Source of the DNA: Lepidodermella squamata
Taxonomy: Eukaryota; Animalia; Gastrotricha
Assembly (NCBI GenBank): GCA_047495785.1
Contig: JBLDXI010000024.1
Coordinates: forward strand, 2,356,001-2,420,000
Reading direction: 5' to 3'
DNA: 64,000 nt
Shown here: in pieces, positions 41,965 through 49,271 of the stretch
Numbering within the stretch: the first letter of the stretch is position 1
Layout: each line of letters starts with the position of its first letter
The notes under the pieces: model-generated
The model's database searches: none
What the model was told of the DNA's origin: nothing
The model's input: the letters and a program-made list of their open reading frames with translations, nothing else
Position numbers and translations under genes: made by a program

Positions 41965-42147
41965 TTTCACTAATAAAACTAAGACTTTGACTGGCATGGA
42001 ATCTACTACGCCCATTCGACGCTGTGTCTATCCCTTTCATTCTCACATCTTTTGACAGGCTGCCCCATTCATCGATCCAGGGTATGACTTCTCTCGTGAA
42101 AAGCAGAATATTCGGACATATTCATCGTTCATTCAACTATTTTCCTT

Positions 42148-44146
42148 TCATAGATACGGTAAATAAACCAGAAAAAAATAATTTATTGTTAAAAATACTG
42201 AACGGTGAAATTCATTTTTTCAGGTAAATGTCTCGCAGTTTCCTCCCGGTTTTGATTCCTTAGCCATAATTCAAGGGATCTTAAACCACGACAATCGTCG
42301 AAATCATCGGGCAATTCGATATCAGCCTCCATCGCTTTGCCTACATCGGAAAAATAAATTAAAAAAATTGATAGACCTATTTTTCAACTACCTATTAGGG
42401 TCGAAATTCCAGTCAATCGAACTAGGTAAGCGTCATGGTCGTTCATTCCGAGACCAATGATGAGGCTGTTGGAGCTATCGATTATGAGACCAGTGGAAAA
42501 TGGCAGTGGAAATCGGAATAAACGGCTGTAAAATCCGTAGATTTTTCGGTGCTTCGTCATTATTGATTTATCGATAAAAATCGGCGAGGAAATTAGGACG
42601 ATTCTTTGCAGCCTCACATTTATTAAAACCAGCTGAATGGCGTAATCTAAAAAATTTGAATAAAATTAAAAAAAATTAAAAACGTAGGGGGACAAATAAG
42701 ACGAGGACAAATACGACGGGACAAATAAGAAGAGGACGATTAAGATAATTTATTATTAATTTTATAACAGGACAATTAAGACAAATAAGACGAATAAAAA
42801 ATAACAGTATTATTGGGCTTTTTGGTTGGGATTTTGGATTTTGGTTAGGGTTAGGGTTAGGGTTTATGGATAGGATCAGGATTAGTCTTATTTGTCCCGT
42901 CTTATTTGTCCTTGTCTTAATTGTCCTCGTCTTGATTGTCCCGTTATAAAATTAATAATAAATCATCTTAATCGTCCCCGTCTTATCTGTCCCGTCTTTA
43001 TTGTTAATTGTCCATATCTTAATTGTCCTGTCTTATTTGTACCCTTTCCATTAAAAAAATTTCAGACTTACTTCGAAGGTGATTTATCATCTCTTGACTG
43101 TGGGTTATTGTCAGGTAATAATCGCCAGAATATTGTAGGACAGGTGATCCGCCTCGAATTAAATGATCTTCTCGCGTTGAATTTTTCCTCTTGAATGTTT
43201 TCACCCGATTTTCGCAAACTTTCGCCGGCTTCACGAATTTGCATAATTTATATTTCGAGCCGAAATTCGGCTTTGAATGATCACGGCATTTATACATGAC
43301 GATTTGCGGTGAAAAACGGGTTATTAAATGCAAATTTCCATCGATAACCAGCGGTACAAAATTCTTCTGACAGGTCGAGTTCGAAAATTCGGGCGAAAAT
43401 TCTAAATTGAACAGCTCACGGTCTTCAATAGACCACAAATAGTGACGTCTAAAAAAATCGAATAATTTTCATAAAAATGAAATTAATTCCTCTTACCCTT
43501 CTAAAAATTTATGGGTCACGTAATTTGTGAAGTAGAGCGTGAATAATTTCCCGCCGATTTCGAACAGTCGAGGGTCTTGAAGGCCGTTATCTCGAGCTCC
43601 AGCATCAGGCCAACTCGCGATAGGGATGCTCAAAATTTCACCAGATTTTTCAATAACTCGATAATTCGTTCGATCAAGCTCGAGATAATAGATGTAATCA
43701 CTCGGGAAGTATCTCTTCATCGGCGGTTTTTTCCTAGGCAGGACATTGCCATATTGCATCCAGATTCGAACAATACAAGCTAATCGATTTCGATCGCTAG
43801 GTTTCACAACGCAAGATGGGTGGATAGGGCGAGGTTGGAAATGCCGAGTGTCGATATCGGCGACCACATCGGGGAACATTGCCCGAAAATGGCGTAAAAC
43901 TCCGGTTTCAAAGTCGTGCAAAACTGCGGTTTTGACCAGGCTGGAATACTGGAGAATCATGCTTAGATTTCTGGGGTTTGTCGAAGCTGCGGATAGGTTG
44001 AAGTCGAAGTGATGAGATTCGAAGTTACTAGCCATTTCGGAGGTGATTCCATCTTCTTGTTGGTTAAGAAGTTGAAGTAAATTTAGTGAAATTGCTGTTA
44101 TTAATAAAACAGTGCCACACCATCTCAAAGTCGCAACTTTTCGCAT
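42148..44146 (-). CDS. GT91 (BMT)/GH130-like beta-propeller glycosyltransferase candidate, paralog A, 4 exons
   Basis: TM anchor, HPSC, GLQDPRLF, QKNFVPL, LIRGGSP, ISSPIF, G.G.ND. Stop position approximate. Confidence 0.7.
42683..43049. mobile_element. Intronic foldback MITE with ~15-bp subrepeats (GGACAAATAAGACG) and a central (TTAGGG)3
   Basis: Inverted arms about 42686-42795 and 42885-43045; ATTAAAAA on both flanks; TTAGGG x3 at 42845-42862. Confidence 0.8.
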
Positions 44147-44184
44147 TGGAAAAATTCTAAAAAATTGCGAAAAAGATTCGAATT

Positions 44185-45752
44185 TTAATTAATAATCTCA
44201 GGTTTTGCGAAATATTTTTCAGCAATCAATCTGTATTGTTCATCAAGCCACAATTTTAGGTTGCCAATTTCGGATTTCGAATTTTTCCTATCAGCTGCAA
44301 TGGCGGATTTGAGCATGTCTCTGAATCCTTCCAGCCGGACAAGAACGGCAGCTCGATCGTTGATACCAGTGCCGTAGACCAGGCTGTTGTCGCTTTCTAA
44401 GATTAAACCAACTGCGAATAGATACGGGTTTTCGACGCTGTACAGCCGATAAGGATGACCATTATCGTGATGCGTGAATTGAGGATTAGGAATCGATCTC
44501 ATAATTTTCGGGTCAGTGATAATAGGAGAGGAGACGAAAACAACGCGAAGATTCCGAAAATTTACCAAAGTTAATTGAATAGCATAATTATGACCTGAAA
44601 ATTGAAAAATTATTAATATAATTTTTTATAAAATTTCAATTTCTGAAATCGATTTTCAAAATTTCAAAATTTTAATTTCAAAATTATAACCTCTCGCGCT
44701 ACTATTCGACGCGTGTCTTGAGTGGGTTATTGCCAGAAAATAATCCCCATCGTATTGAACAGCCGGGCTTCCGCCTCTGAGAATCAAAGCTTCCTTTTTC
44801 GATTCAGATTTTCCTCTCCCCGATGTCGATTCGACCAATCGACAGCGCTTAAAAAGCGCCCACCTCAATGCGCCATTCTTCGCTTCGTCTTGACATTTCA
44901 GCAATCGAAAATTTGGCGAAAATTCGTAGATGAAATGAAGCTCATTGTCTATGGCAAGAGGTACCCAGTTTCGCTCGCGATTTCCAAGCTTCACGCCATC
45001 AATTTCTAGATTATACAGATAATTTTCATCTACGGAGTATAAAAATTGGCGCCTACAGCAGAAAAATTCCTATAAAATTGATTTAAAAGTTAAGGAATTT
45101 TTACTCACCCCATGTCTCTTTTCCCTTTTTTCCAGTGATTGTAAAACGTGAAATAGACTTTGCCGTCCAATTCGAATAATCGAGCGTCCTCAACACTTCG
45201 GCCCAGAGTTCCACCAAGACCAGGGTATGCCATAGTCGGAATTTCGACCAATCGCCCAGTACCAGGAATGATTTGGTAATTACGGTCCAATTCCATTAGA
45301 TAGATAAAGCTATCTTGGTACAAACCCCGGTTAGGCTGGTTCTGCTTGTACAGCTGACTATTTTGCATCCAAATTCTAACGGTACAAATGAATCTATTCC
45401 GATTCCCAGGATAACGAGGGGCACATGATGGATGGAAGGCGAGGGGTTGAAAATAATCCTTTTCGAGCAGTGAATTTTTCGGAAACATTTTCCAAAAATG
45501 ATTAATGACTCGATGCGTGAAATCGGCCAAAACTCGGGTCGAAACGTTGGCAGAAATTTCGCGGGTTAGAGTCCCATTTGAATCCGGAATCAAGCCATTA
45601 ATGGTGAAGTGAAAATTCGGATGTTCAACGGCACCTTGAAATTGCGGATTTACCAATCGATTCGCCAATTTTCGAGCGGCCAGAAAAATCAAGCAAAAAA
45701 TAATTAAATAATTAAAAATAACATTCCAACGTATTTGAAGAGATTTTCTCAT
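44185..45752 (-). CDS. GT91/GH130-like glycosyltransferase candidate, paralog B, 3 exons
   Basis: SVEDARLF, ERNWVPL, ILRGGSP, VSSPII, GTGIND. Confidence 0.7.
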
Positions 45753-45783
45753 TTTTCTAAATTGAAAATAAATGAAAAAATAA

Positions 45784-47565
45784 TTATAAATTTATTGTTT
45801 TTCGATGTTTTCTTTCCGCAGCCCTAGCTGCAAAAATTCGATTCATAGCCGACATTTCTTGGCATTGTTCAGGGAAGTGAAATTCCAGTTCGCGTTTATT
45901 GAATAACCGAATTTGTTTTTCAAATTGTAGGTGAAGCTTTCGAGGTTCAATATCTGGCGAAGTTTCGTCAGCTTTTATCGCCAAATCTGACAAATTTACA
46001 CAAAAATCGATTTTATTCAATTAATCAAAGATTTTACCCATCATTTTCGAGAATCCTTCCAGGCGAATCAGATAAGCATCATGATCATTCAGACCAACGC
46101 TGACAACCATGCTGTCGCGGTGTTCCAGGTACATGCCGATCGAAAATATCAGCGGGGTGAAGAAATACTTGGCATAGTGACCGTTTATATACCGCTTTTT
46201 AACCATTGTTTCCTTATCGAAAATAATTGGCGACGAAGCGAAAACAAGTCGCTGCTTTCGCACGTTGAACAGGACGATTTGAATGGCATAAACTGGAAAA
46301 ATTAAAATTAAAATTAAAAAAAATAGAAAATTAAAATTTCGAATTTCGAAAATAAAAAGGGATCCTTTTAGGTCCAGTTGGAGTAATATTCCAAAAAATC
46401 GAAAAAATCGGACAGGTAATGCTGAAATTCATTAATTTAAGGCTGGAACTTCAGAATTAAAAATGTGTAGACCCGGAAAATACTTACTCGCTACCTGTTC
46501 AGGTGTTTCCTTTGAGTGTGTAACAGTGACGTAGTAGTCGCCGGAATATTGCACACTCGGCGAGCCGCCTCTAATAAAAAGCTTCGATTTTATCGGCGCA
46601 ATTCTAAAATTCTGCCCAGTTTCTCGCTTTACGAATTCGCATCGCTTGAAAAAGGCCTTCGATTGCTGATATTGATGATCGTCGCATTTGAACATCTTGA
46701 AATCAGGCGAAAATTGGTACACGAAATGAAGATCGTTGTCGATGATGAGCGGTGAGAAATTCTTCTGATACATCGACTCGGTCAAATTTCCAGGCAACTC
46801 GAAATTAAACAATTTATTGTCCTCAATCGACCATAAATATTGACGTCTAAAAATTTTTGGAAAAATATAAAAAAATCAACCTTAAAAATATTTATCTTAC
46901 CCATTTTTCATCTCTTTCCCCTTGAAATTATTCAAAAAATTGAGGTAAAGCTTGTTATCAAAATTGAAAATCCTAGCGTCTTGAGGACCAGTTTTCGCAT
47001 TCGCATCAGGATAAATCGGGACAGGCATTGGTAAAAAGCGTCCCGAATTCGGGACATAGGTGAAATTTTCGAAAAGTTGCAACAAATAAATCGAATTTAA
47101 CGGATACATTGGCCGCTGTTTCTCGTCAGATTTGAGGCCCAAATTGAAATACTGCATCCAAAATCGGATCGAACAAACAATTCGGCGATCACCATTATTG
47201 GAGTGAGGTACACAGCTAGGATGCATTGGCCGGGGCTGGTAGAATTTCGAATCGTCGACTACAACACTTGGAAACATTTTCGCAGCTTCGTCGAGAACAA
47301 AGTGCTCGAAATCAACCAGGATCGAAGTTCGGACATTCGCACTGATATTTGCGAGCAAATCGTCCGATTGCTGTAAAATCAGCCCATGAAGCGTGAAATT
47401 CATCGGCTTAAAACCAGAAGCTTGATGAGAATTCAAAGTCGCAGCATTTTTCATGCATTTTCTAAGGAATTTTCCGCCATTTCCAAGGTAGAAAATTGTC
47501 AGGAATAGCGATAGGATAAGCGCATGAAAAGCAACAGTTGACGGTTTAGGAATAAGGAGTCTCAT
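45784..47565 (-). CDS. GT91/GH130-like glycosyltransferase candidate, paralog C, 4 exons
   Basis: GPQDARIF, QKNFSPL, FIRGGSP, ASSPII, VGLNDHD. Confidence 0.7.
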
Positions 47566-47633
47566 TATCTTAAAACCTAAAATTAAACAAAAATTAGTAA
47601 AATTTCCAACAAATTGATAATTTATAGAAAATA

Positions 47634-49271
47634 TCAGCAAACAGTTGTTGCAGCATCGGGAAAAAATCGGTCGAATTCTACATCATTTCGATATCGTAGC
47701 CATTTTTCCATTTTAAGGTGGAGATCGCGAGATTTGACCTCGTTTCCGACATTTTGATCGGCAGCAATCGCCATTTCTAGAAATTATGTTAATTTAATTT
47801 ACAAATTTTCGGAAATTAGATTACCCATCGTGCTGCGAATGCCTTCGAGTCGAACTAACACAGCATCATGGTCGTTAAGACCAACTCCAATGACCAAGCT
47901 ATTGCCATTTTCGACGTAAAGCCCCGTCGAAAATATCATCGGGCAGTAGAAAAATTTCGAGTATTCGCCGCGAATCACCCTCGGCTTCGTCATAACTGAT
48001 TTATCGAAAAATATCGGCGATGAAATGAAAACCAACCGCTGGTCTCGAATGTTGGCGAGAACAAGTTGAATCGCAATTCCTAAATAGGATTCATGAATTT
48101 TCTAATTGAATTAATAATTAACAGTTACTTCTTTTCCCATTTTTGCCATGTTTGAATTCTTTGGTATGAGTAACCGCGACGTAGTAGTCACCCGAATATT
48201 GAATAGCCGGCGAACCGCCTCGAATCAGCAGTTTTTCATTCCTTGGAGCTTCTCGAATTTTCGCCGACGCCTTAGTGACAAAACCGCAGGATTTGTACTG
48301 GCCTCTGGAGTTTGATTTAACAATATCTCGGCATTTGAGTAGTTTAAAATCGGGTGAAAATTGGAAGATGTAGTGAAGTCCGTTTTTAAAGGTAAGAGGA
48401 GCAAAATTTTTCTGGTATTTCGATTCGGTCAAATTGTTGCCGATTTCCAAGCCGTAAACAGATTTTTCGTCAAAGGACCAAATGAACTGCCGACTAAACC
48501 GGAAAAATAACAATTAAGTAGGATAATTTTGAAAATTTTTGAAATTTTCTAAAAAATTTAATTTTCTCACCCGGCTCCAGCATAATTTCCAATATAGTTG
48601 TTCAGGTAATTCATGTAAAGCCTTCCTTGAAATTCGAAGATTCTCGCATCTTGAAGTCCGTTTCTCGCATCGGGCGACGGCCAACTCGGTATAGGAATCG
48701 GCACAAGCATCGCAGAATTGGCCACATAATTAAAATCAGCATCGAGCTCGAGCATCATAGCCGAATTTAGCGGATAATAAGGCCGCATAGGGCGTTTTTC
48801 CGGCATGAAATTCTGGTATTGCATCCAAATGCGAAGAATGCAGACGACTCGATTCGCATTTTGACCTGGTTTCGGGACACAGGACGGGTGCATAGCTCGT
48901 GGGTGGAAGAAGGACGTGTCATCGCTGATCAGGCCGGGGAACATTTTTTCGAAATTTTCCAAAGCCATCGGGGTGAGATCGGCGAGGACAACGCTTTTAA
49001 CCGATGAATTAACCTCGCGAATTCCTTCATCCGAGTCGATAATAGCCCCGTAAAGGGTGTATTCGAAGCCAGTCCGATTTCGAGCGGCCCCAAGTCTCGT
49101 TTTATAGCTAATTTTCGATGACGAAAAGACGTTCTCGGATGGTACGCCATGCCAAAAGAAGAAATTGACGATGCAGAGAGCAATTGAAAGGGCTAAGGCT
49201 AGTTGGCATCGAAAAATGTAACGGTACAACTGAATTAAAACCGCTGTCATTTTGTAGCGCAGGAATCGCAT
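47634..49271 (-). CDS. GT91/GH130-like glycosyltransferase candidate, paralog D, 4 exons
   Basis: GLQDARIF, QKNFAPL, LIRGGSP, ISSPIF, VGLNDHD. Last exon EMAIAAD...ATTVC* ends at 47634. Confidence 0.7.

Follow-up and report, generated by a model that had tools for sequence, protein, structure and literature searches.

The gastrotrich Lepidodermella squamata carries a tandem cluster of genes homologous to fungal beta-mannosyltransferases (BMT, GT91), within a stretch of 64,000 nucleotides (nt) from contig JBLDXI010000024.1 of assembly GCA_047495785.1 (positions 2,356,001 to 2,420,000 of the forward strand), hereafter the window. Four intact paralogues, termed genes A to D, are arranged head-to-tail on the minus strand at 42189-49271 and encode proteins of 471-493 amino acids (aa). 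They are real, spliced genes under purifying selection. The cluster probably represents tandem duplicates from an expanded animal branch of the BMT/GH130/GT108 group, with products that act as type II, inverting glycosyltransferases of the Golgi or secretory pathway.

Splicing and sequence variation were assessed by comparing two read sets with the window: X2, an RNA-like run of 2015, and X1, a DNA run. Contigs from X2 skip introns 1-3 of gene A (77, 49, and 48 nt) as well as the first intron of gene B (54 nt), all of which show CT..AC ends on the plus strand, and at 43449 a loose X2 end crosses intron 1 of gene D into the end of exon 1. None of these splice joints is found in X1. Of the exonic sites at which the window varies from the X1 and X2 runs, 24 of 29 fall at third codon positions (p = 6e-8); a further 11 variants are intronic. 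It is the intron skipping in X2, together with this third-position bias, that establishes the genes as real, spliced, and selectively constrained. The gene models are as follows.

Gene A, 49271-47634, minus strand: coding sequence of 1464 nt, 487 aa, 4 exons.
Gene A exon 1, 48571..49271, minus: ATG at 49271; anchor, stem, and predicted first propeller blades; LQDARIF Asp codon at 48650-48648; donor at 48570 confirmed by the X2 joint 48493/48571.
Gene A exon 2, 48129..48493, minus: QKNFAPL, FSP..KC, RGGSP, and THT; X2 joints at both ends.
Gene A exon 3, 47825..48079, minus: SSPI and GLND, predicted last blade; from sequence reading and X2 joints.
Gene A exon 4, 47634..47776, minus: C-terminal tail of 46 aa and stop; X2 joint 47776/47825.
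Gene B, 47565-45784, minus strand: coding sequence of 1482 nt, 493 aa, 4 exons.
Gene B exon 1, 46901..47565, minus: ATG at 47565; PQDARIF Asp codon at 46980-46978; X2 joint 46846/46901.
Gene B exon 2, 46488..46846, minus: QKNFSPL, KC, RGGSP, and THS; frame closed by the GTAAGT donor at 46487.
Gene B exon 3, 46038..46292, minus: SSPI and GLND; sequence reading.
Gene B exon 4, 45784..45986, minus: tail and stop; sequence reading.
Gene C, 45752-44185, minus strand: coding sequence of 1416 nt, 471 aa, 3 exons.
Gene C exon 1, 45109..45752, minus: ATG at 45752; VEDARLF Asp codon at 45188-45186; variant sites 4/4 at third codon positions.
Gene C exon 2, 44691..45052, minus: ERNWVPL, KC, RGGSP, and THS; sequence reading.
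Gene C exon 3, 44185..44594, minus: SSPI, GIND, and tail, with no third intron; sequence reading.
Gene D, 44146-42189, minus strand: coding sequence of 1434 nt, 477 aa, 4 exons.
Gene D exon 1, 43497..44146, minus: ATG at 44146; LQDPRLF Asp codon at 43576-43574; X2 loose end at 43449.
Gene D exon 2, 43072..43448, minus: QKNFVPL, KC, RGGSP, and THS; sequence reading.
Gene D exon 3, 42392..42646, minus: SSPI and GMND; sequence reading.
Gene D exon 4, 42189..42340, minus: tail and stop; sequence reading.

In these models the exon sums of all four genes are divisible by three, and the introns are of the GT-AG type, 48-425 nt in length, and located at homologous positions in phases 2, 1, and 1, with the third intron missing from gene C. 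Each protein begins with Met-Arg and a short basic tail followed by a hydrophobic stretch of about 18-20 residues, an arrangement that fits a type II signal anchor and from which the topology is predicted. The motif (L/P/V)(Q/E)D(A/P)R(I/L)F is located at the 3′-end of exon 1, the motifs (Q/E)(K/R)N(F/W)xPL, LxxxYxFSP...KC, and RGGSP follow in that order in exon 2, and SSPI and G(L/I/M)ND are encoded by exon 3, in every one of the four genes. The initial annotation had described four intron-containing genes for type II membrane proteins with this order of motifs and an invariant Asp in the EDPR-type motif, and the anchors, closed frames, and X2 splice joints confirm that description, the Asp being kept in A, B, C, and D. 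Its extent of 42148-49271 correctly placed the start of gene A at 49271 but ran 41 nt past the stop of gene D, which is at 42189. Pairwise identity among A-D in exon 1 is only 28-39%, implying that the duplications are old.

With regard to family membership, the window genes were searched exon by exon, and the other searches used paralogues from elsewhere in the genome whose open reading frames (ORFs) are naturally uninterrupted. Word-index protein searches were blank with gene A exon 1 and with the 368-aa ORF of the paralogue L018, and gave 11 matches with an alignment of 119 sequences. The uninterrupted paralogue ORFs match the Pfam family PF12141 (beta-mannosyltransferases, GT91) at E-values of 2.9e-7 to 2e-5 over model positions ~240-327 of 486. 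The fused-exon paralogues score 29.9 (L018), 26.9, 26.0, and 23.9 bits against a curated cut-off of 28.3 bits, which L018 alone exceeds and which no window exon reaches. Matches of the paralogues to GH130 (PF04041) are faint (E 0.13-0.2, 11-12 bits) and fall short of the 26-bit cut-off of that model.

A more sensitive view is provided by a profile built solely from this genome’s copies (A3), which was searched against an exhaustive protein library. At E <= 1e-3 it retrieves 981 proteins, with PF12141 carried by 82 of the top 119 matches (best E 7.4e-32). Among the retrieved proteins is P0136 (E 5e-12), which combines the BMT-like motifs EDPR, EKNW, and RGGTP with a full-length match to the GH130 model at 47.5 bits; alignment of A3 with P0136 by hhalign gives a probability of 98.3%, with EDPR, EKNW, RGG, and the His aligned. 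Homologues of P0136 that are 27-32% identical to it are found in metagenome-assembled genomes (MAGs) of Parachlamydiaceae, Chlamydiae, and Verrucomicrobia (L043-L050), and on sequence grounds the Parachlamydiaceae and Verrucomicrobia MAG proteins bridge BMT and GH130. The closest full-length relative is P0004, a 454-aa single-exon protein from a eukaryotic metagenome contig that is 40% identical to L018; the three exon pieces of every window gene align with it colinearly (for gene A, BLASTP gives E 5e-17 for exon 2 against P0004 residues 238-344, and E 2e-11 for exon 3 against residues 352-433). A further environmental protein, P0077 (652 aa), contains a BMT-like propeller domain fused to a GT32-type domain (Gly_transf_sug, DXD). 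In the literature searched, GT91 and PF12141 are not mentioned for animals.

The cluster is a small part of a larger family in this genome. Gene A exon 1 as a query detects 27 places and a profile covering the exon 3 region 39, from which the family is put at about 35-40 copies, with large clusters on contig 15 (3.66-3.74 Mb) and contig 31 (1.56-1.76 Mb). Intron 1 or intron 2 is missing from some of the copies, which thus contain natural uninterrupted ORFs of 273-397 aa, and two full-length members, L028:1611-3182 (523 aa) and L029:1551-2972 (473 aa), on contigs 9 and 1, are single-exon genes. A six-frame scan of the whole genome with PF12141 gave four weak places, indicating that the Pfam model undercounts the family. 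The resemblance to GT91 and GH130 and the amplification that the initial annotation had proposed are both borne out, the former by the PF12141 proteins retrieved with A3 and the bridge through P0136, the latter by the copy number and by the position of A-D in an expanded clade (100/100).

Named homologues, all of them uncharacterised proteins with several copies per species, occur in the nemertean Lineus longissimus (LOC135503084/135484734), the annelid Owenia fusiformis (CAH1801734/CAH1784812), and the brachiopod Lingula anatina (LOC106151431), at E 1e-43 to 1e-30 to the A3 profile. Naming covered at most 30 of the 150 hits listed, and 20 of the 30 looked-up clusters bore names. The Lineus and Owenia genes are located on chromosome-scale contigs of 13-62 Mb and the Lingula genes on contigs of 136-248 kb; the Lingula and Owenia genes that were checked are single-exon. 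In a maximum-likelihood tree rooted on P0136 and constructed without fungal GT91 reference sequences, A-D form a clade (100/99) inside a 13-row clade (100/100) in which five environmental sequences fall among the expanded copies of this genome. The nemertean, annelid, and brachiopod proteins and the two single-exon copies of this genome make up another group, of 38 rows (94/88), and a third clade, from a non-animal eukaryote, forms a trichotomy with both animal clades. The third clade is marked by a Sey1/RHD3 neighbour: at L052:4585-8529 (GCA_914767885.1) a tandem pair of PF12141 genes lies beside a Sey1/RHD3 GTPase gene of a non-animal eukaryote, and the L052 gene may be interrupted by introns or follow a different genetic code, as table 11 does not give the recorded product. 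Judged from these sequences, the family predates the divergence of the spiralian phyla concerned, one branch was expanded in this lineage and acquired introns there, and the family so far constitutes a spiralian animal branch of the BMT/GT91 - GH130 - GT108 superfamily.

The fold was predicted for P0004, a member of the clade. Its model shows a helix at residues 2-34 followed by a predicted five-bladed beta-propeller of the GH130 type, which also matches the Leishmania MTP enzymes (GT108). In a shape search of the ESM Atlas the nearest cluster is eukaryotic, mostly annelid, and carries PF12141, and the next nearest are chlamydial clusters with both GH130 and BMT matches. A broad family profile aligns GPEDPR with the GVEDPR of the beta-1,2-mannobiose phosphorylase 7fip (E 0.0018) and with that of 9fj8. 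In GH130 enzymes this motif contains an invariant Asp (Asp142 of BT3780, Asp104 of UhgbMP) that is the candidate for the catalytic acid; the +1 mannose is bound by the Glu just before it, and O4/O6 of the −1 mannose by an Asp near the C-terminus, Asp363 (PMC4599007). Via P0136, the family’s G-x-N-D is aligned to the G-G-A-D of Teth514_1788, a correspondence of sequence and not of superimposed structures. The first-motif Asp and Arg are retained in genes A-D, as are (K/R)-N, R-G-G-S-P, the His, and N-D; of these, K/R-N and R-G-G are conserved across relatives. Genes A, B, and D possess Phe where Trp is invariant in 138 of 138 relatives and Gln for the Glu that precedes the catalytic-type Asp, a position at which 17 of 138 relatives also have Gln. 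Gene C retains both Glu and Trp and is the first branch within the cluster, implying that the two changes arose in the A/B/D ancestor; they may mark an altered acceptor site.

On the proposed mechanism, each protein would carry a five-bladed beta-propeller in the lumen, joined by a stem to a single anchor with a short basic tail on its cytoplasmic side, and would act in the Golgi or the secretory pathway by analogy with fungal Bmt and Leishmania GT108 enzymes. It would be an inverting enzyme that adds a sugar to a glycan acceptor in beta linkage, the sugar being most plausibly mannose and the donor GDP-mannose, by homology. The Asp of (E/Q)D(P/A)R would function as an acid/base relay in catalysis, that of G-x-N-D would hold O4/O6 of the donor sugar, and the diverged paralogues would probably differ in acceptor specificity. 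Transferase chemistry is supported indirectly by the relationship to BMT, the anchor-plus-stem architecture, and the GT32-fused relative.

Several observations weigh against this proposal. Pfam searches with ten window exon ORFs gave noise only, with no PF12141 match at E <= 1. The fold evidence comes from a model of a relative that is about 25-35% identical to the window proteins, and the modelled fold is somewhat more similar to GH130 phosphorylases than to GT108 transferases. Import of GDP-mannose into the Golgi is not known in animals. In a crude search with a GALNK-type motif, none of the genome’s ten TPT-family matches contained it, and the same motif as a DNA pattern gave two unrelated matches in the genome and no Vrg4-type transporter. 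Moreover, the Gln of genes A, B, and D occupies the position at which the substitution E141Q abolished the activity of BT3780 (PMC4599007).

This last point, together with the change of Trp to Phe at an otherwise invariant column and of Glu to Gln beside the Asp, raises the question of whether A, B, and D have lost their catalytic activity and bind glycans as lectin-like derivatives. We consider this highly improbable: the three genes have lost none of the residues Asp, Arg, Lys-Asn, Arg-Gly-Gly, His, and C-terminal Asp, Phe is a conservative replacement for Trp, Gln recurs at its column among the relatives, and the variation shows purifying selection. The proteins could also be membrane-tethered and GH130-like but not biosynthetic, trimming or recycling beta-mannosides as phosphorylases or beta-mannosidases, an alternative for which the fold comparison offers some encouragement. 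This is unlikely, as the sole Pfam family matched significantly is BMT, with GH130 at insignificant E-values, Golgi glycosyltransferases are usually built with an N-terminal anchor and a stem, and one relative is fused to a GT32 transferase domain. Biosynthetic Golgi transferases are the interpretation that we prefer over both.

The origin of the family is a separate question. The initial annotation had inferred an old horizontal acquisition, and entry into animals by transfer from a fungus, protist, or bacterium, followed by amplification, is possible, though less likely than not; the alternative is vertical descent accompanied by losses. The named homologues found so far are confined to spiralian phyla, no intron interrupts the Lingula and Owenia genes or the nearest full-length relative, related families exist in ascomycetes, diatoms, giant viruses, and chlamydiae, and the clade in the trichotomy with both animal clades is protist- or fungus-like. 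Nonetheless, transfer is not established. With members in at least four phyla and on chromosome-scale contigs, the family is no private or recent acquisition; in the tree, the animal sequences are not enclosed by any donor clade; and, with names for only 30 of the 150 listed hits, its absence from other animals is not shown.

The spacing of the genes is compact, with 68 nt between A and B, 31 nt between B and C, 38 nt between C and D, and 173 nt to the next gene (window 42015-47634, one strand), and each ATG is located 4-13 nt downstream of a T-rich AG acceptor-like site. The short spacers and acceptor-like sites fit an operon with trans-splicing; no leader or bridging transcript was found for the A-D string. 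The next gene downstream (42015-40478, minus strand) encodes a putative type II membrane protein in two ORFs (313 and 137 aa) that match nothing in Pfam or the PDB; a single motif is reminiscent of NodZ/FUT8-type fucosyltransferases. Intron 2 of gene D (42647-43071) owes its length of 425 nt to a foldback element with no part in coding function, its arms built of ~15-nt subrepeats and its centre containing three telomere-like CCCTAA units.

Foldback repeat element in gene D intron 2, 42707..43004, no strand assigned: arms at 42707-42782 and 42929-43004, 76 nt, 88% complementary.

GT91 has been treated as a fungal family with an unknown, possibly novel fold (PMC8476585). The animal branch described here, with multiple copies in several spiralian phyla and a great expansion in this genome, ties GT91 by sequence to GH130 and, through a predicted fold, to the GH130 and GT108 propellers. 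If beta-mannosides are made, animals would gain a glycan class thought typical of yeasts and Leishmania, with a bearing on cuticle and mucus chemistry and on innate immune recognition, and the route of GDP-mannose into the animal Golgi would become a question. A bolder and rather doubtful extension is that spiralians run an unrecognised Golgi beta-mannosylation (or related beta-glycosylation) pathway on GH130-fold transferases, here with ~35-40 enzymes encoded partly in tight, possibly trans-spliced strings, that would make fungal-like mannan or beta-mannoside epitopes on the surface or in secretions.

Among known systems, the fungal Bmt/Wry proteins (GT91, PF12141) appear to share the type II architecture of the animal proteins and have in common with them the motif order GPEDPR, EKNW-P, Cys, RGG(T/S)P, His, and N-D; theirs is the only Pfam family that the paralogues match significantly, mostly below its cut-off, whereas the animal proteins have a conserved stem region of their own. 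GH130 enzymes (RaMP1 5ay9, BfMGP 3was, Teth514_1788/1789 9fj8/7fip, BT3780 5a7v) are soluble and bacterial, in contrast to the anchored and stemmed window proteins, and the PF04041 threshold is not reached by the paralogues. For the GT108 enzymes (Leishmania MTP1, 2, and 4; 6q4w, 6q4x, 6q50) no direct sequence-level match was found; these enzymes are cytosolic and make storage mannan, whereas the window proteins are predicted to be membrane-anchored. The Lineus, Owenia, and Lingula proteins share the domain layout over their whole length, stem included, but the window genes belong to a separate, expanded, intron-bearing clade.

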